The notes below the pieces were generated by a model that was given only the letters and a program-made list of their open reading frames with translations, searched no databases and was not told the origin of the DNA. Shown here one piece after another: positions 1 through 17,902 of a stretch of DNA of 64,000 nt (its first letter is position 1; the number at the start of each line of letters is the position of its first letter). Both the position numbers and the translations under genes were made by a program. The stretch spans positions 186,001 through 250,000 of the forward strand of contig DF236967.1 of NCBI GenBank assembly GCA_000708835.1, given 5' to 3'. Source of the stretch: Klebsormidium nitens (taxonomy: Eukaryota > Plantae > Klebsormidiophyceae).

Positions 1-3000
1 AGCGCGGGGGCGTTGGCCTGAGGAGAAAGGAGGGGACGGGTGAGGCAACCAGAAAGCGGTCGTTGGCCTCAGGTTACAACGAAGTTGGCGTCGATTCAGG
101 AGAGAAGCTCTTCACAATGGTGGAAAGTCCGTTGCGGCCAGAGTACTGAAAAGCCGTCCTAAGTTCTGCCCCATCATGTTTGGTTTGGATGAGTCACAAA
201 GAGAAGCCCGCAACACAATCCAGAAAGCCACTCTACAGCGTCGATGTCTCAGCCTGAAGCATCACAACTCGGGCTAGGAAACGAAAAAGCCCCAAAAGCC
301 CACCTGCTGGCTCTTCATGAGCGGCGCCAGGCAGTTGGAGACCGCCCGCTGTACGGCCTCAGACGGCGTGTTGAGCACCTCTAGCATCCGCTCCACGATG
401 TCCGAGATCTTAGGACTGTCCGGCGACAGATGCTTCGCGAGCGCGCCCATGAAGATGACCACTCCCTCGCGCACCAGGTCGTAGCGTTCTTCGTCGGCGG
501 ACTTTCGGTCGAGGTAGTTTTCGAAGATGGGAAGGAGAAGAGCCACGTTATCCGCGCCGTGTTCGTTGATGATGGCGCACCCGGCGTCGACCATGCGGTC
601 GCGGACGTCCGGGTTGGGGTCCGCCTGGGGAAGAGCAGCGTCCAAAAATGGTTCAGATAGTAAAGAAAGGTTACGGTCCGCTGTCTTGCGTATTGATCGA
701 GTGATTGCACGGGAGTCAAGCAGGTGGTGCCCAAACGATGTGGGTCTCTGGAGGCTCAACACGGAGTGAGCGCAAACTGTGGAGTAGCGGTACTCGTCTG
801 CCTTTGGCGACCCTTTCATATGCATACCCCGTTATTGATTGAGGCACACCGGAATTTGGATCATCATGGACCAACCGAGCCGCTACAAAATCGTTTCAAC
901 TTTCCGTCTAAACCAACTTACCAGCGCCCGAGAAATCAAGAAAGTCGCCACCACCGGCAGGTCCCGGTTCGTGAGCACGTCCGCCCCCTCCTTCAGCGTC
1001 AGCGCCACTCCCTCCCTCCCGTACCATCGCGTATCCCCCCCTGGTGCAACTCTCCCCACCGGACTCTCCCTTATGAACAGCGCAAACAGGCTCGAGAGCG
1101 TTTCCGGAACCGTCGCCTGGTACTCGTCCATCGCCCCCGCGACCGCGCTCGCCGCAGCTTGCCGCACGCTTCCGTGGGGGCTGGTTAAGTGGGCGGTTAG
1201 CTTGGGCGCGTACCCCCCCCCAAGGTCGTGATTGTACAAGTCCCATACGTCTTCTGCGGCTTTGGCGTTGGCTTCCACTGGGTCGTGCATGGCGAGCCAG
1301 AGCGTGCAGGCGATGTCGTCGGAGGGGGGAACGGAACTAGAGGCGAGGGACGGGATAGAGGCGAGGGAGTCCAGGCACGCGTGGCGCACGTGGGCGTGCT
1401 GACTGGTGATCCCAGTCAGTGCCTGGAGAAGGAAAATAGGGATAAATGAGAAGCGATAAAGGATCGAGGTGCGACGTAATCAACCGCCGGTGCCACCGTG
1501 AGGCTTGGTCATTCCATTCAACAGGATGGGTATGGACTTTCAATGAAAGCTTTTAACACCTTGCATGTCAGTCGTTTGTAAGAACCCATGCTCGAAGCTG
1601 GGGACACATCGGTCGAGATTGTCGAAAGTGGTCCGCTTCGTCTGTTGTTACTGTTCAAGGAAGCATCGCAAGGCAGCCTCCCAAATCAGATATCGCAAGA
1701 GTCAGAAACATGTCGTAGCCGTGTTCACGTCAATTAACGCCCGCCACCACAATGGTGAGAAGCTTCAGCTACGAAAGAAAAAGGAAGTGCTGCACCGTAC
1801 CCCGAACACTTCGTCTTCTTCGAGGCCTTGGCAGAGCTGCCGCAGGAGGGGCACCACCTTATCATGGTAGACTGGCACGCAGCCCAGGACCTGGTACAGG
1901 GCCTGCGCAAGAAACAAGATAAATCAGGCTCGCGCTCTTTGCACGCACAGCGCGCCTCGTTCAAAACCAAGTGCCCACCATCCTCCAGATGCTGCGGTGA
2001 AGTACAAACATACGGGTCTACCGCTGCCTGCCGTCAAAGACCTATGTCCGGTGAAATCAACGTGATCCTTGAAAGTTTTAAGCCGTGCTCGAAAAATTCT
2101 ATTATATCTTGGGAACGTGCACTCACGGCGATCATACGGTGGCGGGGCAGGTCCATGACGGGGGCAACGTGGAGCGCGAACACGGCCAGCAGGTCGTCGT
2201 GCAGCTTGGTCTTCTTGTCCGCGAGCAACACCTGCTCCAGCACCTGCACATGCGCAGCACAAAACCGGTAAAGAGCGGTCCTGACTGAAGAGGTTGCTTG
2301 CCTTCTTAGCATTCCTCTCCCCTGCACGCAGTGAGCGAACTCACCCCATACTCTTTGGCTGATCTTGCTGAAGCCGTATATGTGAAGGCCCAACGCGCTA
2401 CTTATAAGTCTTGATATGATTTACTGTCCGTCAGGATGCGCATTCATAATAAACCCACAGAAAGTAGTAGTTGTCACAAAGGCAGGAAGAGGCCCTCAAA
2501 TGGACGGCTCCTTCGTAGATGGACCAATTCGCGAGAATTCAAGGCAAGCGAATTCAATAAGACAAAGCTCTAGCGTTCCCTCACCGGCCAGACAAATCCG
2601 AACGTCGGCGTCGGCAGGGGCCCTTCTTGCGTCGCGGCCACCAGCCCCGCCGTGACTCGTTCCACCGTCGACTGCTCCTGCTTGCCCTTCTTCGCAGGTC
2701 CGCTTGCCAGCTGTCCGACCACGTGGGCTGGATCGGTGGTCACCAGGCGGAGCGCCGTGGCAATGTCGTAAGAGAGGTAGCGCAGCGGGGGGTAGACGCA
2801 CTGCGCCAGCTGGGAGGTGGTGTCGTATGCGTCGCCATCGACGAGGGGGTTGCGGAGCAAGGGGCGCACCTCTTCCACCTGAGAGATTCAGACGCATTGA
2901 TTTGAGAGCATATTCTGGTGAATAACAGAGGGGGACTGGGCTATGAACAAGGTGCGGGATGTGGAACCGCCTCTGCGAAAGATACACAAACAAGTTGCAG

Positions 3001-6000
3001 CAAGCGTCAAGCCGTTCCACCAAACATGGTTGATGAACACGCTGTATTCTAATATAACAAGGCGAAACGCGATGCTGCAAGAAAGCAGACTCTGACGGCT
3101 GCGAAGAGGTGGGTCTTCTCAGGCATCATCACCCCGCCTAGCTTTCCTCCTGCGCTTACCGCCGGCAGAGACTCCAGTTTGATCCTTCCCACAAGAAGCA
3201 GTACGACACTGATGGACCTACGTAAGAGAAACAGCCTTATACTCTTAGCGTCTCACCAGTTGAGGCAGATGGTCGTGGGCGAAGTCTCGGTTGGCGATGG
3301 CGGCCGTCCCCAGCGCCTCCAGTTCGAGGGAGAGCGTCTCCTGAATCTGCTGCAGCCGCGCCCGGATCTCCGCCTCTTCCTTGAGCTGCTGTTCCCGGAA
3401 CTCCTCCTTCGCCGTCTTCTTCTCTGGACAAGGCACCAGACGAGGAAAACATGAACGGACGGCGGTGGTCCTGCGGTGCTTAGCATTCAAAGCGATTGGA
3501 ACAAATGATGCAAGAATGCCGCCATGCGCGAAGCACAACAGGCATGCAAGCGAGCGTTGCTCGAGGAGAACCGGTACTTGATGTGCAGCTGACAACCGCG
3601 CTTCTTTTCATATTTAGACGAGGCTAGGGTTCTCAAGGAGCCACCGTTTTTCCCGGCTTGGCATCCCAGCACTTCAGAGAAGTGACCCTCAAAATCAAAG
3701 GCTTTGTCCCGGTACAAAAGAACGGAGTAAGATCGGAAGCAGTCCAGCTACGGAGGAGAAGTCTCAATACTGGTCCACTTCGGCAACCTTCAAAGGGCTC
3801 ATGAGATAGCTGCGCAGCTCACCTGCTTTTTGCCCCGGCCTTTCCTTCTTGCCTGTTGCCAAGCTTGGCCGGACTGCCGGCTTGCTTTCCGGCTTCTTCG
3901 AACTTGTATCCTGCAAAGTGAGAATTACATTCAACGGCTCAGTAATCTGGTCACCATCACAACGCGTACTCGAACAAGACTCACCACCTTTGGAGGCATC
4001 TTTATACCACAGCAGAATCCGATCGTTGCGCAGTCTCTGTCCGTCTCTTCCTCACTTCCTGACCAGATTGGTGTAAGACAGGCGGTCTCAACTGGTGCTC
4101 AGTTGTCAAGCGTAACCCAGATGCTCTCATGCTCGCAAGCCTTGACAACGCACCTCATCATCGTCGTCGTCATACATCTTGAAGCGCCCGCGCGCGCCTC
4201 GCCGGTTCTTGTCCTGCACCACCTCCGCTTTGTACAAGCCCTCCTCCGTCGACAGGATGCCGTCAGGCGTGTTGAAGATCTGCATACGCGAAGTGTAGCT
4301 CAATTCAAAAACCTCACCATTATACCGCACACTTTTACTGCACAAGAACCACTGAGCTGGTATTTGACTACCAGGAACGAAAATTTGCCGTCAAAGAAAC
4401 AACATTCTTCAGCGCAGGCGACGTTTGTCCTTACAGGCAATGCAAGCGCTGCGACATCAAACTCGGTCTAAGGGCCCTCACTTTGACGTCCCTCTCGGTC
4501 AAAGCATCGTGCAGGTTGCGATCTCCCAGCTTTTCGAGTGCCTGCAAGGAACGTCGTACTCGAATCGATTGAGAAGCTGCGGCCTGACAAACACGAAGTG
4601 CAATAAGATGCAACCGTGATAAGATATCATTCTCCCATAACACCGATCAAATTTCTTTCCGTCTTTTCATCGGAGACTCAATCATTGCTTGCTATCCCAA
4701 AAGAATAATGAAAGCGAACGAAGATTATGAAAAATAACCGACTTTAAAAGCCCATGTGGGCCAGTGGTAGTCAGAAAGTCGGAGAAGCCCTGGAACTTAC
4801 GGAGAAAAGGTGGGGAAAGAAGTCGCCGGGGAAGATCTGCATGGCTGTGGCGAGCCCTGCGACAGCGGCCCGGCTGTTGGAGTAGCGCCGGCTGGTCAGC
4901 CCGTGCGGTCCGAGCAGGACCTGGAGGGAAGCGAGAAGACGAGCAAATCGGCTTCACGTGAGCGAAGTAGTAATGGAAGGAAGCGCCGACCTTGAATCGA
5001 AGATCTTTTACGTCTTCTCGTCATCATTTTGCCGTTGACCCGTAGAGGGTCAAGCTGAAGCAAAGCAATCAAGCAAAACATTCACCATATCCGTGCATCA
5101 AGAAGAGTTCTCAATAACCTCCCCAACAGCATAACTCGCTCGGACCTTTATATCGGCCGTGATGCCATGCAAGGTTAGCATTCCAAGTGCCGAGAAACAT
5201 GTTTGCTGCTGCAGCCTGCGGGTGCGGAACGGTCCGCCCCCAGTTACGCTGCAGCGGCTTCGCTCTAGGTGTACTGACTGACCGGTTGCACGATGATTAC
5301 CCTGGACTCTGGAGGAACTCCAGGAGCGTCCAGAGCGGAGTGCCCTCGGCTAATTAGACACCGTGCTTCGGTGAAAATCCATAAATCAAGGGCCAAAATC
5401 AAACAGCAAGAGGGCTAAGGTAAAGTCAAGCGCCAGCTATGCCTGCTTACCTGGGTCAGCGTTTCGGCGTTGGAAGCCATTAGGGCGTTGACGTCCCCGC
5501 CTTGCTTCTTGAGGCCTCGACTCAGCGCCTGCGACAGGCCAGTTAGAGTGCATTAGCCACAAAACAAAGGGAGACTAACGAGCAACATCAATGAACTGGA
5601 AGACTTTCCAGCCAAGTGACGAGTCCATTTCAACCTCGCAGCTGATTGGAAGCTTTCTACGCCCGGAAAGCACAGTAGAAGGCACTTTAACATTTTTTCC
5701 ACAAGGGTCACCGCATAGTTTGGCAGGAGTCTCAGGTTTATGGCAGCCTTACCCGCCAAACGGAGCCCTTCCGCCTGCCTCGCGCCACGACCGGATGATG
5801 CGCCGCCACAAACAGCTCGCAGCTCTTCTCGGGGCTGGAAACTAGAGCTGGGCTGGAAATGGCGATCAAGGCCTTGGCCAGCAGGCCTGGGGGAGGAGCT
5901 GCGCTGTCAACCGTCTTGTCGGAGCTCTTGTCGGTGCTTTTGTCGGTACTCTCTGCGGGCTCGCTGCACAAAAGAGCCGTTTTCCAATTGCAAATGCATC

Positions 6001-9000: not shown

Positions 9001-11101
9001 TGCGTCCGTCGAGTTCGTGAACAGCTCGGCCGAGACGCCCCTAACAACCCGTTTTCCGGATTGCACAGTCTATGCACCACCACTGGATACCGCGGGGCTC
9101 ACCTCCCAAAAGCGCTTTGGCTGCCTCGAACATCTTTTCCACCACGTCTAAGTCACTGCTCTGCGCCGCCAAACCCCGCACCACGTCGGCCGCACTCGTC
9201 CGGAAGCTCTCGTCCGCATGCCGCACGTGCTGGAGCAGCGGAGGCAAAAGCTCGAGCGCGTGCTTGCTCAAATCTAAGCTGACCGATTCCACCAGATCGC
9301 GAATGGCCTCGATGACGACTTCGGGGCTGCGCCGCAGCATGCGCACGGCGGTCGGGAGAATGGACGACGTGAAGTCGTCGTGAGAGAGGCGCTTGAGGAG
9401 CGGCCGGAAGGCCTGGCTGAAGAAGGGGGCTGGCTTGTCCTTGCTGCTCAAAACCGTCTTGACGTACAAGTCGAGGAAGAGGGCCTAGAAAAGGGGGGGA
9501 ATGTGAGGGTTGAAAGTTTTACAGTTGAGTTAGGAGCCAACTACATCTGACGAAAGAAGCCCCGCAAATGTTCCTTTATTTGATACTGTGACAGGAGGAA
9601 TAAACTTAGACAGCGGTGGATCTTAACCTACGTTGAAATCCATTTTAGTTTACGTTGAAATCAACCACCAAGTTCTGTGTATTGTCGGATCTCACTGGAC
9701 ATAACAATTTTCAACATGCATCTGTCGATGACTAATTCAATTAAGGTGGTGGTAGGTACCTTCTTTTCTTCCAGAAGCGCCTCCTTGCTCTGCGCATAGT
9801 CCAGGAGGGCTAGGACAAGCCCCAAGACGCCCGTAGGCGCCTTGTCTCCACCCACAACCTCTAGAAAGACAGGGACAGATGCGGGAACCTGCAAAAGTGA
9901 AGGGGGCACACTTTTGCTGACGGGAAGCCACTGGCAAGGGCAGGTGTAGCCTTGATCAGTTGGACATCACGCCTGAGCCCTGATTGGATTGAACGTCACA
10001 AAACTCTAAGCGAGAGCTTGCCCCTCAAGCTTGCAGCAAAAGAGACGCCCAGAAGTGCCCGGTTGCGATGCACTTGATCGGAAGAAGAAATGAGCATAAC
10101 TCCATTCGAAGAGGCAACTGAGCCTCTAATGAATTGCAACCAAACTTCCACCACCCACGTAACAAGGTTCCATCCTTCAGAATTACCACTTACTTCCACC
10201 GGCAGCATCTTGAAGTGGCGCTCCGCTACTCTCCACAACCGCTCCCCTCCACGGAGCAGATCCGTCAGCAACACCGCCAGCGCGCCGGCCAGCCTCAGAA
10301 ATGCCCCTTTTGCTTTTGCTATGTCAGGACTTGTGCGGATCAAGAGCGAGATCCATTGCAGCAGCCTGAAGCGCCCCCTGTTCCCAATGCTGTTATGGTT
10401 CTTCTCAACAGTCTGCACAAGCGTTCCGGCAAATGCCTTGACGAATGCTGGCTCCCTGTTGATGGCGTCAAAGAGGACGCGGTCGACTGCAGCCTGAGAC
10501 TTGCGGTCGTCGTACAGCGGCAGGGTGCGGAAGATGAGCGCCACGAACTCGCCGGCCTTTTCGTCAAGCGGAAAGTCTGCAGCGCAGCAGCATCCAATGA
10601 GAGGTGCGCAATGAAGGCAATATTTGATCTCAAAAACCAATGATGGGGGTGCATTCTCCCAAGACCCTTTTAGCAGGCGCACAGAAGAAAAGCCCGTTGT
10701 AGAAAAGTCCTTAGAGGTGGTAATGATGCATATGAAAGAATGACACATGGAAGACACTCTGATGGGTTTTCCACCACTGATACACTGTTCATTCAGCTTT
10801 TGATCGGGTCTTGCACATCTGCATCAAGGATACATGGCAATCAGAGCAACTGGAATAAGCGAGGATAACCTGGACTTTTTGAATGCAGACCTTGTCCTCC
10901 GGATGGTAGATGCCGAACATGATTGCAAGACTAAGTCGTAGACCCACCTTCATTCGCGACAGCAGATGCAAGGCTAGCATCAAAGACACTGATGCGCTCT
11001 TTCACCGAAGAGCTTGCAAGATGAGTAGCCGCCCGTTCCAGTGCTGCAAACGGATCCGGCACCGTTGATTCAGCTGCTGGCTCAACTGCAGACTCTGCCA
11101 T
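1..11101 (-). CDS. GCN1: GCN1/ILITYHIA translational activator (HEAT-repeat ribosome collision sensor); multi-exon, 3' part lies outside the window
   Basis: ATG at 11101 (MAESAVEPAAES...). GT-AG exons include 11101-10948, 10576-10194, 9888-9760, 9484-9103, 8776-8627, 8260-8076, 7788-7662, 7366-7293 and 6993-6917, with further exons down to position 1. Peptides match plant GCN1 in the expected order: IFRTLPLYDDRKSQAAVD, LPTAVRMLRRSPEVVIE, GLKEKETLRRAHLR, IFNTPDGILSTEEGLY, KKTAKEEFREQQLKEEA, KKTKLHDDLL, WYGREGVALTL, ADEERYDLVREGVVIFMGALAKHL, VLNTPSEAVQRAVSNCLAPL. Confidence 0.96.
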
Positions 11102-11294: not shown

Positions 11295-11303
11295 AAACCC
11301 TAA
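11295..11303 (+). promoter_or_regulatory. telo-box (AAACCCTAA) in the GCN1 / PET117-POP1 divergent promoter
   Basis: Exact AAACCCTAA between the two divergent ATGs (11101 and 11555). Telo-boxes are established cis-elements of plant translation and ribosome-biogenesis genes. Confidence 0.5.
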
Positions 11304-11554
11304 TTCAACCAAGCCTGATCTGTGACTTTGCGTGGTCCTGGACAGCTGTCATGTATGGCCCTGGGACACAGCAGCCTGAGCTAGGCACAGGCGTCCCCAG
11401 CAGGGCGCCCGTTGGCATTGGCATTGCCATTACTATTAGTATTAGCTTCTCAGGTTGGCTTCTACTCAATTGTACATATCAGCACAGACGTAATACTGAT
11501 TGATGTTTCTGATTGGGGAGTGGTGTATGCAATCTGCTTGCCAGGCGGTCCTCA

Positions 11555-12070
11555 ATGTCGCCTGGTGTGTCTCGGGCTGCCGTCCTGACGTTTGCCGTGG
11601 TAGTCCTCGGGACAGGCGGTGGCATTTTGTACATCCATGAGAGTCAGCAGACGGAGAGACGGGTGAGCACAGTCGTAATGCGGCGCCAATGTTGCCAACA
11701 TTTTACAGCTTGTGCTTCTGTCTGTGCATGGGCTTGGATTAAGCAGCTTCTCTAAGGTGCATTTGAAGTTTCAGAGTGTGCCTATTTCACAGCTGTCTCA
11801 TCAAGTGTTCGCCTGCTCTGTTGAGTGATACTGCAGCAACCAATGCTGAGGGCAATGCTGGATGCATTGTAGCGTGGGTTGCCTTATTGGAGTTCGACCT
11901 TTTTGACGTGATGATGGGTGCAATTGCAGAACCTGCATGCTGGAGTCCTTCGAGACCAGCAGCTTCTGGCGATGAAGGCAGAAGAGCAGAGGAAACAACT
12001 GGAGATGCAGCAAGGAAGTGATCCCAGGACCCTCGCGAAAGGATCCCCGCCAGAACCTCTTACCAAGTGA
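11555..12070 (+). CDS. PET117: PET117 cytochrome c oxidase assembly factor (83 aa, 2 exons: 11555-11662, 11930-12070)
   Basis: Spliced peptide MSPGVSRAAVLTFAVVVLGTGGGILYIHESQQTERR|NLHAGVLRDQQLLAMKAEEQRKQLEMQQGSDPRTLAKGSPPEPLTK*. It has one N-terminal TM helix followed by the PET117 pattern (vHxxQxxeRxxLhxGVxRD). Donor CGG|gtgagc, acceptor ttgcag|AAC. Confidence 0.88.
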
Positions 12071-12090
12071 AGGTCACCACCCACTCCAAC

Positions 12091-15000
12091 ATGGACAGGC
12101 CGTCTCGTGCTCGTGCCAAGGGGCCTGACAAACGGGCCTCAGTCGGCGCAGCACTCAACCGTCCTAGTTCACTTCTTCCTGTTTCCTCCGCGCCTAGTCT
12201 GGAGCAAGAGGGAGCCTTGGGGCGCGAGCGGCACATCGGGCCGCCTCGCACGCTGAACGTCTGGGACTTTGCGTCGGAGCGAGCGGCTGAGATCAGCAGC
12301 CTAAACGAGGTTCTCAAGAGTCAGGGGGGAAAGGGCCTGTTCACACTGGCTAGGCATCTACGGCGGAGGACTACCAGTCACAGCAGGCGGCAGTTCCTGT
12401 TCCGGCCCAAGAAACAGAAGGTGGAGTCGGAAAAGGAACTAGAGCAGGGAGATGGGGGGGAAAGAAAGCCTCAGTCCAGGAAGGTGCGGCGGAGGGCAAT
12501 GCTGCAAGCAATCAAGCGAGGGGAGGCCAATGTGGTAAGGCAGCCAAACTTCTTAAGTTAAAACGACTTCGAACCGCCCCAACTTGTTGTACGGTAAAGA
12601 AAGTATGTTGCTTTCAGGTTGCGGTGCTTTAACGATCCTGTGCTTCTCTTTTGCTTTGGATGATATTTATAAATCCTGGAAAGGAGGGCAGCGGAGGCAG
12701 CGCTTGTCAGGAGCTTGTCTTGCAAACACTCTTCCGATCTGCAATCGTAAGGATCCGAGGCATTCAAATGGAGATGCCATCCTCAGTCGCCCAAAATTGC
12801 AACCACAAACCTATAGATGCGGAAAAAATGGGGTACCGTCTGAGCATACCAGCCTCATCAGCTGGAGAACCGGGACTGCTATACGCGATCGGCAGCAACA
12901 CCTTGAAAAGGTCAAACGTGCTACACCCGCGAATTGAACCACGACCATTTGGTCCAAGTGTGACTTGTCACTGCCGGCCAAAGCAGCCGCTCTAACCACT
13001 TGAGCTGTTCCAAGGGATAGGTTTACAGATGCGACTGTGCTACTCAACAACCTTCATATGACTGCCAAAAGGCTCATATTTCTCAATAATATTTCTCCCG
13101 TTTTCAGGGCCCTGACGGAGACATCCGCCTGGAGACTCACGTGTGGCACGCCAAGCGCTTTGTCATGGAGCATCTCTGGGGCCACGTTTTGGCCGCCGGC
13201 CTCCCAGGACGAGGGCGTGGCTCGCGCTCTGTCCTCCGGGCAGCACGCTTTGCCGCTCTAGTTCACGACGCCACTTACGTGCAGCCGATTCAACTAGAAG
13301 GCCCCCGAACGGCTGTCTTTGAGGTCCTGGAGTCGGTGTCCTCTTTTCGGCGAGCAGATGCGGAAAACGGGTCAGCTAAACCGGGGAATGAACCAAGGAG
13401 AGCGGGAGAAGAGGGGGGGGTGTTGGGGAGTGTAGCGTTCGAGGTAATGTTACACAAGCAGGGGGATTTTCCACTGGGCGCAATTGCGCCTGCGACTTTG
13501 ATGTGGCGGCCCCAGAGGGGCCAGTGTTCCGGACCCGTAGCAAACGAGGCGGACATGGAGGAAGACGGGGCGGGAGATGGGGGGCTCCGTGATGGTGACG
13601 TCAGCATGGCTGCAGCGCCACATGAGGAAGCGCTGGGCGACTACATCCCTCTGGAGGGATCGACTCCGACGGCCGAGGCGGGGCAGGCGGTTCCGTCTCG
13701 GACTCAGGACATGTCTTCGGAACAGAGGATCGCAGGCCTAGACTCTGGGCTGGTTGTTGGTAGGGATCGAAGCGGGAAGAGAGAGAACGATCCGATGGAG
13801 GAAGATGAGCGGGAAGGCTTTGGGGGCGCCGCTCGTGCTGACGAGGGTGGGAACGGGGAAGCCGCGGCGCAGTGTCTGGTGTGGGTGCACGCGGCGGCCT
13901 TTGACGAAGCGCTGGGTGTCCTTCAAGGGGCGTGTGCAGGGATGGTGAGCCTTTCAGTATTGGTTCTTGTCCATCCTGCTGAGTTCCACACGTGCTGATT
14001 GTGCATGCGGGTGGCTTTTACTGAGGCATTGGAGCGACTCCGGTATGGCAATTGCTCCGTTCATGAAACAGTCTCTGGACTCACGGATGGCGGTCTGTAA
14101 TGTTCGGAGGCTGAATGAAACTCCAATTCTTCTTCCAGGGTGAGGGGAGCGCCCCCGGGTTTCCAAGGGTGAGGTGCCGGTCCAGGAAAGGCGAGTTCGT
14201 GCGATTGGACGTCATGGGTGCCGAGACCCGTACCGTCCTCTCGAAGGTCCTTCGGCCAATCCGGTGAGTAACGTCGAAAGTCGAAGAGCTTGGGTCTTCA
14301 CTCCGCATCGTGAGCGGATGACGTTCAGGCTTTCTGAGCATCCTTTGTATCTGGAGCCGATGTGACCTCACTAGACCCAAGCTCGCAAGGATTGGTCACA
14401 GATGTTGCGACTGCCGGGTCCTGTTTGTCGGAATGAGCGCATGCAGCCCGGAGCTTCCACTCGAATCTTCGCCGACGAATCTTCTCACGAATGATGCAGG
14501 AGCGGAACATCGTCCCCGGGCGCTGATGTGTTTGAATCAGACGGTGCCACGTGGCAGCGGCTGGTCAGTCCAGCCACTCTTGCTCGTTTTCCTCCTCGAG
14601 CAGTCCTCTCGCTGACGGTCGAGGACCCCAGGCACCAACACGAGGACGTCAGCACGTTCGCGCAACCGGAGCTTGTTCCCTCCCTTACGGAAATTGGGCC
14701 AGATGCAGATTTGCCCCCAGGCTTCGCTAGCCCGCTCTTTTCTCCTACGCAGCCCACACCGAATATGCGCAAGTCTCCTTCCGATCATCTGTTACAGTCC
14801 CCAAGACCCACACCACCCCTTTTCCAATCAACGGACGTTAGACCCCCCTCCATTGATCCTAGGGAGAAAGAATTGGCCCCCTATGCAGCGGCAATGGGGG
14901 CCGACTACCCCCTGCTCTGGGACCCCCCCAGAACACCGGACGGTAAGCCTTTGTGGCCCAAACCGGTGAGCAACACCCTTCTAGGTGACCAGCGGAGACA

Positions 15001-16951
15001 GGCAAGATTAGCTAGCTTTGGGCTGCCCCCGGAGTCCCCGGGGCCAGCCAGGGGGCGGGGTAGAGGTCGAGGGGGGGTGTCCGGAGACCGGGGAAAGGGC
15101 GGGGAAGCCGAAAGCAATGGGCGGACTTCTTCGTGCTGTCCAGTGTGGCTCGTCCAACGGCCAGCCGATGCGGAGTTTGCAGCAGGGTGAGCAGGCTATG
15201 ATTCTGACGTGGGTCTTCAGCTAAAGCCATACATCTCGTGTTCGATACTTTCATCAAAGTATAACCAATGATTGCTTTCAGCGTAAATTTTTCAAAGAAA
15301 GAAGAAAGATTCTACATTGTCTAGAAACTGATCCTGTGTGTTTTGAGCTGTTTTGTCATGTCCGCTCTTCGGTGAACAGCGCGACCTTGACCGGTTGCTC
15401 TCCCTTTCCGAGGCCGTTCTTTACGAGAAGCTTACGTCGGGCATTCGTCTTTGGGGCGAAACGGCAGATCCGTCCCATCAGTGGTGATTGACGTGCCGCG
15501 TTGCGTGTATACTTTGAACAAAGGAACGCTACGTAAGTTCGGACTGTTGCAATTAAAGCCTAACCTTTGCCGCGCACACTCTGACTTTTGATTGTCCAGC
15601 CCTAATCCTTCATCCGTCGAGTCACGAGCGGGACCCCGTCCTCTTTTGACCTCTCTATGGTCCGTCATGCATTGAGCGAGGACACTTTTCCGCGTTTTTC
15701 CGCAGGTGGACCCTCATCGTGCCGTCCGGCTGGGCCCTGCCTTTCTGGGTGCCGCTTATCTACGCTGGCGCACACGCGGTGGGACAGCGAGAGCGAAATT
15801 GGGTCGTGACTGAGGTGAGGCTGTTGCAAAGCGCCGATTAATTCTAACAAACCACATCCTTTTGGGCCCACGAACTGATTATTACATGTATCAAAACTTT
15901 CCACTGCATTGTTAGCTAGCAGCAGCATCGATGTCTGCAGAACGTGTCGGTAGCAGTACCTACTTATACTTTGCGGTCAGACACACCACAGGGTTATTCC
16001 AACGCCGTTTGCATTCTCATGAACTCTTGAGTTTTGGATCACTCCTGAATCTGTTGCTGAGCCCACCTCGCCGTGTCTCCTCCTTAAAGTCCGTGTTTAT
16101 CCTGCCAGGCTGGGACTCCCGTCTTTCCGGACGACTACCCGGACTGTCCTGCGTACGCCCGCACATGGCGATTGAGGCACCAAAAGCTCCTCGACGAGTA
16201 CGCCAAAAAGCCTCCCGCCAAGCGGCCCGCCGAGCCGCCTCCGCTGCCGAACTGGGACTCAGTCTGCAGCACCGGGGCAAGGGAACCGCCGTCTGATCAG
16301 TCGATGGGTGGACAAGCGCCCGAAGCGAGTGCGCGAACCTCATACTTCGTGGCACGGGACCGAGCGACACTTGCGACAGCTACAGGGGTGGCACGTGAGA
16401 ATGTCGCGTCCGATAGGGACCGGGGACGGAGAACCAAAGGCGTGAGGCAGGGTTTGAAAGCCGGAAAGCTGACGTGGAAAGCCGTGGGAAGTGTGCCTGA
16501 GATTGGGGCTCTGCCCAGGGAGCCTGCTGGGGGGGCTTGCTGCCTGGTCGAAGCGCTGCTTAAGATGCCCCGGAAGGGAGTCCCCGAGGAGGGAGCCGAG
16601 ATCCTGGTTCCGACACAGGACGACTTCGACGCGTGGTGCAAATCGCGGACGTGGCAGGGGGTAGAACTCCCGCGAGAACGGGGGAGGGGACGAGGAAACG
16701 AGCTTGCTCAAGCGGGGCCTAACCAAAGTAGGCCGGTAATGGGTTATGTAATTTCGCCGAGTCCCCCCTCAGGCAGCGCACAGAGCCGGGCGTTTGTAGT
16801 GTGTCAGGCGTCCACCTTTCAACGCTTAAGGGCGAGGCAATACTCTGAGAGAGCGGCTGGTGGGGACGCACATGTGTTTGTGCTGGTACATAATTGCGGC
16901 TCGAACATGGGGAGGCCGGGGCTGCTGAGCTTAAAGCTGGACCAGGAATGA
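12091..16951 (+). CDS. POP1: POP1 protein subunit of RNase P/MRP (6 exons: 12091-12534, 13108-13944, ~14140-14266, 14500-~15186, ~15706-15811, ~16108-16951)
   Basis: N-terminal LNVWDFASERAAEISSL...LRRRTTSH; POP1 motif RLETHVWHAKRFVMEHLWG...GRGRGSRS...LVHDATY; POPLD motif GWTLIVPSGWALPFWVPLIYAGAHAVGQRE...FPDDYPDCPAY; canonical splice sites. Confidence 0.92.
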
Positions 16952-17902
16952 ATGTACGACAGACTGACGACCTGCAACCGTCCATATGATTGTCGGCCTC
17001 GACTGTCTCTGTAGATTAAGCTCTAGCTCAGGCTGTGCCAGGCGAAGTTGCCTAGCCACCGAGGCGGCGCGCCAGCTGTTTGACCTCAACTTATTAATCG
17101 TAGTCCATCCTCGCAATCGTACATCCGAAGCGCTATATCTGGTTGCGCGCGCATTCCTGGAGGTACTGCACTGAGTGATCGTTGCGCAAGCATTGCCTGG
17201 AAGATCTAATAATTATACCAATCAAGCAGCTATAGCTCGTTATATGCAAAAGGCACAATGGAACTTAGGTTGCGCACCATGAGCATGTTGGCTACTGGCG
17301 CGTACATATATGCGCCCACTCATGCATGGCTGATTATCGCGATCGGACAATTTGTTGCAATGATATATACAGATGCACCATGACTGCGCGCCTCGCAACC
17401 ATATGGCTGCAACATATTGATATGCTGTTAGACTGCAAATCAGTCAAAGAATTGTTGCTAATCACGCAAGATTCGTTGCTAAGCATGCCATGCGCAAAGT
17501 TCTGCGCACATATGTGAGAATTACGGGGTCTGCGCGACAGTAGGTTTAATGTGCGGATCTGAAAAGTATTGATGATTATGTCACGTACTGGCCCATCGTA
17601 ACATATCCTTAGACAGACCATACGCGACACGTACTTCTGGACGGTATAGCGACCTAGAATTCTGTTTTGAAGGCCGGCAGCCTGGTACGCTTGCGATGTA
17701 AAGCTGGTACTAAAAGCCCACACAGTGGCACAACAGTCAACATCTGGCCGGCTTCTGAGCTGTATATCCCCACTGGCAAGAGATACCCATGGCAAAAGCG
17801 GATACAGTCAACAGAAGTTCCCGCGTTTCGGACCGTATCGTCCATATGTATGTACAGTACAATACTGCTTCAGCAGTGAGCCCTTTCTTAGGGGCTGAAC
17901 AA

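Follow-up and report, generated by a model that had tools for sequence, protein, structure and literature searches.

In a 64,000-nucleotide (nt) stretch of the streptophyte alga Klebsormidium nitens (assembly GCA_000708835.1, contig DF236967.1, positions 186,001 to 250,000; referred to as the window, from whose first letter positions are counted), two unrelated protein-coding genes, PET117 and POP1, lie directly behind each other and appear to be expressed as a bicistronic unit. PET117 is a membrane-anchored cytochrome c oxidase assembly factor, and POP1 is the large protein of RNase P/MRP. At the contig level a shared PET117-POP1 mRNA is well supported, and it is probable that one message carries both open reading frames (ORFs), the support coming from spliced contigs and not from single molecules. 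An earlier, sequence-only reading had placed the PET117 stop codon, TGA at 12068-12070, 20 nt ahead of the POP1 ATG at 12091, on the same strand and in a different frame, and the sequence bears this out: the two ORFs do not overlap, and each possesses its own start and stop.

RNA contigs were taken from four runs of four studies (X1, X2, X3, and X13; Logan contigs) and placed on positions 11300-17250. All of the joints in these contigs correspond to GT..AG introns, and the contigs therefore represent RNA. Each of the four runs contains one contig that starts at 11377-11384, lacks the PET117 intron, and continues from PET117 exon 2 over the spacer through POP1 exon 1; this same contig also splices out 12535-13107 and extends into POP1 exon 2, and a single contig of 2440 nt in run X2 reaches 15093. 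The RNA assembly over both ORFs is unbroken, with neither contig ends nor branches between 12070 and 12533 in the four runs, and these runs offer no contig or joint pointing to an alternative form of PET117-POP1. At the other extremity, the contigs end at 17087-17113. The mean word depth of the PET117-carrying contig is close to that of the contigs covering POP1 only (43 versus 42 and 48, 18 versus 19 and 29, and 51 versus 41 and 60), which is counted as weak support because contig depth is a poor measure. In a wider set of 17 runs from six studies, the words sampled from 11450-12540 were present at a share of 0.69, about that expected for this stretch minus the intron. The proposal of a single mRNA with both ORFs is supported by the spliced contigs of four studies and by the adjacency of the genes in four related taxa, although contigs do not show single molecules.

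The spacer (12071-12090, plus strand) is C-rich, contains no AUG, and is crossed by every contig that covers PET117. A PET117-POP1 fusion ORF is ruled out, as the sequence-only reading had concluded, by the differing frames and by a TGA at 12019, the closest upstream stop in the POP1 frame. The same reading had drawn attention to a GTG at 12067 that overlaps the PET117 stop and lies in the POP1 frame; the codon is present, but it is missing in L001, the locus of the closest relative, and is therefore probably irrelevant. As a POP1 start it is rejected for this reason and because the POP1 N-terminus is conserved from the ATG. A structured element, or one resembling an internal ribosome entry site, was likewise considered and is unsupported: the predicted RNA fold around the junction is not more stable than that of shuffled sequence (z = -0.24), and no Rfam family matches anywhere in the window. 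The polyadenylation motifs AATAAA, ATTAAA, and TGTAA are absent after the PET117 stop and equally absent at the real 3′ end of the transcript, so that these motifs decide nothing.

The first ORF, PET117, comprises two coding exons on the plus strand and encodes 82 amino acids. Exon 1 (11555-11662, 36 codons) carries the N-terminal membrane helix and a YIHESQ motif, and exon 2 (11930-12070) holds 46 codons followed by the TGA; the end of exon 1 at 11662 and the intron between them (11663-11929, 267 nt, GT..AG) are fixed by the splice joints of the RNA contigs, which are found in all four runs. Pfam scans for both proteins were run exon by exon. For PET117 (PF15786), exon 1 scored 19 bits over profile positions 1-28 and exon 2 scored 21.9 bits over positions 30-57, the two matches being collinear and each below the 27-bit cutoff when taken alone. 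A hydrophobic stretch at residues 9-27 agrees with a small protein bearing an N-terminal membrane helix. Comparison of exon 1 between the window and L001 revealed six synonymous and no non-synonymous codon differences, while identity over ungapped columns is no more than about 55-66% in the 5′ untranslated region (5′UTR) and the PET117 intron, which argues that this small ORF is maintained as coding sequence under purifying selection. PET117 is readily overlooked here or misannotated as 5′UTR, and its recognition is also of practical use for annotation.

The arrangement is retained beyond K. nitens. Loci of related organisms were retrieved with two POP1 queries, exon 1 and the conserved beginning of exon 2, and were then scanned with PET117 exon peptides and exon profiles; PET117 exon 2, used as the query of a word search, yielded no candidate, and relatives of PET117 were therefore reached via POP1 only. 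The identity of POP1 exon 1 to that of the window is 83% for P0001 (on L001) and 65% for P0002 (on L002/L003). In four related taxa, POP1 is immediately preceded by PET117 in the same orientation, the spacer measuring 21 nt (L001), 168 nt (L002/L003), 159 nt (L004), and 158 nt (L005). PET117 was not found in the 10 kilobases (kb) that precede POP1 in Elliptochloris bilobata (L008), a chlorophyte, in Pyrus (L012), or in Malus (L013), nor in the short upstream sequence of two more land-plant contigs (113 nt in L010 and 297 nt in L011). An annotated 83-amino-acid gene upstream of POP1 in Malus domestica (L013, GCA_052939275.1, 9649-9900) was considered and rejected; it is the N-terminus of POP1 itself (PPRKINVQKF...), split off by annotation, and not PET117. 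The conserved adjacency that the sequence-only reading had put forward for checking hence exists in four related taxa but was not found at five further POP1 loci, one from a chlorophyte and four from land plants, and as far as sampled the pairing appears to belong to the window's own lineage. This distribution speaks against an old functional tie between cytochrome oxidase assembly and RNase P/MRP, and the suggested functional link between mitochondrial and ribosome biogenesis is unsupported.

In the second clade, the spacer of about 160 nt (L002 1291-1458; L004 2440-2598; L005 207-364) contains a conserved ORF of four codons (MLVA), and the GT..AG boundaries found there (aag|gtacgg ... ttcag|a) could define an intron whose removal would take out this ORF.

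The start codons of the two ORFs differ in context in the way that the sequence-only reading had described, and this difference is conserved. The PET117 ATG at 11555 lies in tcctcaATGtc, with T at both -3 and +4, the two positions from which its context was called weak, whereas the POP1 ATG at 12091 has A at -3 and G at +4 (tccaacATGga), a strong context. Both T residues recur in all four taxa in which exon 1 is available (window, L001, L002, and L004), and the A at -3 of POP1 is present in five of five (the same four and L005). Conserved weak and strong contexts of this kind favour the leaky scanning that had been proposed as the mechanism; the other feature associated with it, a depletion of AUGs before the second ORF, is not found.

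Several observations weigh against the reading of one message translated into both proteins. The first concerns the nature of the RNA evidence: short-read contigs merge transcripts that overlap by at least 31 nt, show no starts, ends, strand, or single molecules, and drop rare variants. Because contigs cannot prove a single molecule, POP1 might also start at an internal site, and there could be two overlapping but separate transcripts joined by the assembly, with POP1 transcribed from a promoter inside PET117 (in its intron or its second exon) and PET117 polyadenylated in POP1 exon 1 or intron 1. A second observation bears on the same alternative. A block in the PET117 intron at about 11836-11862 (CAACCAATGCTGA..GCAATGCT), some 70-95 nt before exon 2, contains a CCAAT motif and matches the L001 intron (5583-5853) in 26 of 30 columns, far above the rest of the intron. 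This block could be the CCAAT box of an internal promoter, a splicing signal, or a chance similarity; it is the sole hint of an internal promoter, and L002 does not have it at the corresponding place. The lack of AUG depletion before POP1 would also suit separate transcripts. On the other hand, contigs neither end nor branch between 12070 and 12533, PET117-carrying and POP1-only contigs are about equal in depth in runs of different studies, spacers of 20-21 nt are too small to accommodate a poly(A) site together with a promoter, and the weak and strong start contexts are conserved. Two separate transcripts are accordingly regarded as improbable, and a shared message remains the preferred interpretation.

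The further points against it relate to the AUGs that a scanning ribosome would encounter. The sequence-only reading had noted four further AUGs in the PET117 mRNA; these four indeed lie between the PET117 and POP1 start codons, but two AUGs in the 5′UTR (11377-11554, plus strand; the contigs of the four runs begin at 11377-11384) had been overlooked, so that seven AUGs in all precede that of POP1. The two 5′UTR AUGs (11503 and 11527) are in frame with each other, each in a weak context, and the 45-codon ORF that they open runs past the PET117 start as far as 11640. Counted from the PET117 AUG onwards, observed versus expected AUG numbers are 5 versus 3.6 in the window, 4 versus 3.7 in L001, 5 versus 7.8 in L002, and 6 versus 7.4 in L004, with the two 5′UTR AUGs of the window coming on top of its five. 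Moreover, two of the internal in-frame AUGs of the window have G at -3, and an in-frame AUG in L002 and L004 has A at -3 together with G at +4, all of which speaks against efficient leaky scanning. As AUGs are not depleted before POP1, pure leaky scanning is doubtful and reinitiation may contribute. All ORFs opened by upstream AUGs terminate before the POP1 AUG in the four taxa examined, and the internal ORFs starting at AUGs inside PET117 span only 12-32 codons, which makes reinitiation possible in every taxon; a spacer of 20 nt is short for it, however. As a separate observation, the second of the 5′UTR AUGs (11527) is retained in L001 and not in L002.

The seven preceding AUGs also lend some weight to a different view, in which the two-ORF mRNA exists but yields PET117 only, acting as a long repressive upstream ORF (uORF), while POP1 is made from a minor monocistronic isoform unseen in the contigs. 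Rare variants are dropped from contigs, and, according to the introductions of PMC7896298 and PMC11892635, several bicistronic loci of plants and animals are not exclusively bicistronic. Against this stand the lack of any alternative contig or joint in the four runs, the termination of all upstream ORFs before the POP1 AUG in four of four taxa, as expected if downstream initiation matters, and the strong and conserved context of that AUG. Only a small probability is therefore given to a message that serves PET117 alone, and translation of both ORFs from the shared message is preferred.

From these data we infer single molecules that carry both ORFs, translation of both proteins from them, and a ribosome route to POP1 that may be outlined as follows. 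RNA polymerase II would produce a transcript of about 3.6 kb that starts near 11377, comprises seven exons with two separate ORFs, and ends near 17100. Some of the scanning ribosomes would initiate at the weak-context PET117 AUG and synthesize PET117, whereas POP1 would be made by those that reach its strong-context AUG, either by bypassing the weak upstream AUGs (leaky scanning) or by resuming scanning after translation of PET117 or of the short internal ORFs (reinitiation). A mixture of leaky scanning and reinitiation is favoured. As to the main source of POP1 protein, leaky scanning is the leading candidate, at a little below an even chance; reinitiation follows as a more tentative option, and a separate POP1 transcript is unlikely. 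The stricter proposal that the message is exclusively dicistronic and that POP1 arises mainly through termination and reinitiation across the 20-nt spacer, after PET117 or its internal ORFs of 12-32 codons, is likewise considered rather unlikely; if true, it would represent a second route for translating bicistronic mRNAs of the green lineage, unlike the leaky-scanning model of chlorophytes.

The second ORF, with the six introns seen in RNA removed, encodes a POP1 of 1014 amino acids in six coding exons, all on the plus strand. Coding exon 1 (12091-12534, 148 codons) holds the start of the POP1_N domain, and its N-terminus is conserved from the methionine onward in L001, L002, L004, and L005; exon 2 (13108-13944, 279 codons), delimited by RNA joints, contains the end of POP1_N with a THVWHAKRF motif. 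Exons 3 (14139-14263), 4 (14500-15186), and 5 (15706-15814) are defined by RNA joints and the reading frame, and the last coding exon (16109-16951) comprises POPLD and POP1_C and terminates with the stop codon at 16949-16951, in accordance with the locus end of 16951 given by the sequence-only reading. Exon by exon, POP1_N reached 18.1 bits in exon 1 and 20.2 bits in exon 2, short of its 22.2-bit cutoff, whereas POPLD (33.8 bits) and POP1_C (39.2 bits) both exceeded theirs; the domain order POP1_N, POPLD, POP1_C is that expected for the RNase P/MRP subunit POP1. A 3′UTR at 16952-17113, delimited by the contig ends at 17087-17113, completes the transcript. Contigs of low depth (about 3-5 compared with 40-60) were also observed within POP1 intron 5 (15200-15569; three runs) and within the PET117 intron (11679-11899; one run); they are connected to no exon and likely originate from unspliced precursor.

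The upstream neighbour of the pair is GCN1, on the opposite strand (window 9041-9469, minus strand; GNC1_N, 128 bits), and it occupies the same place in L001 (2916-3395, minus strand). GCN1 and PET117-POP1 are consequently divergently transcribed, an order common to the window and L001. GCN1 is a sensor of stalled ribosomes.

Bicistronic nuclear mRNAs have been documented in bulk in chlorophyte algae, and on the streptophyte side, to our knowledge, essentially just single cases such as CDC26-TTM3 are known. The chlorophyte examples include TOM22-SDHAF3 and loci with PET100, COA4, or COA6 (Gallaher et al. 2021, PMC7896298; Duenas et al. 2025, PMC11892635). They typically combine a short first ORF (ORF1), often mitochondrial and with a weak start context, with a short inter-ORF distance (median of 40 nt in Auxenochlorella) and a long second ORF (ORF2) (PMC7896298, PMC11892635). 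Leaky scanning at these loci was tied by Duenas et al. 2025 to a weak ORF1 and strong ORF2 context together with AUG depletion before ORF2 (PMC11892635). The PET117-POP1 locus resembles them in its pair of same-strand ORFs, which do not overlap and have separate starts and stops; in the very short inter-ORF distance, here 20 nt; in a short ORF1 for a small mitochondrial assembly factor in weak start context, followed by a far longer ORF2; and in an ORF order retained in related species. It differs from them in its host, a streptophyte alga, and in showing no under-representation of AUGs before ORF2, the hallmark used there for leaky scanning; in addition, PET117-POP1 is described here from genomic sequence and short-read contigs. 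Neither PET117 nor POP1 is mentioned in the text of PMC7896298 or PMC11892635 or in the searched supplements of the latter, and a literature search found no description of a PET117-POP1 locus or of nuclear polycistrons in Klebsormidium. The bicistronic loci reported for the trebouxiophyte Auxenochlorella include one with a PET100 ortholog (PMC11892635). In the Elliptochloris bilobata locus L008 (GCA_040144335.1), a Pet100 gene of 70 amino acids (1224-1532) ends 92 nt before a same-strand gene for an NAD-dependent epimerase/dehydratase (1625-4412).

Within the streptophytes, a parallel in arrangement is the bicistronic CDC26-TTM3 transcript (ref. 11 as cited in PMC11892635), which occurs in land plants as well as green algae and is deeply conserved over the green lineage. 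Both cases place a small conserved protein upstream of a larger, unrelated one in the streptophyte lineage, for PET117-POP1 on a probable single mRNA. The protein pairs differ, and PET117-POP1 was found only in close relatives of the window, the other five POP1 loci inspected giving no such pair. A likeness also exists to regulatory and conserved-peptide uORFs, which precede the main ORF, end shortly before it, and have a weak start context; PET117 is distinguished from these as a spliced, full-length member of a conserved family under purifying selection, and not a regulatory peptide. Taken together, PET117-POP1 adds one locus and a new gene pair to the genes of green algae and plants that encode two proteins per mRNA: a probable shared message of a streptophyte alga, from a gene arrangement retained in related taxa, that extends the bicistronic catalogue and, because AUGs before ORF2 are not depleted as they are at the chlorophyte loci, offers a test case for how a second ORF is translated.

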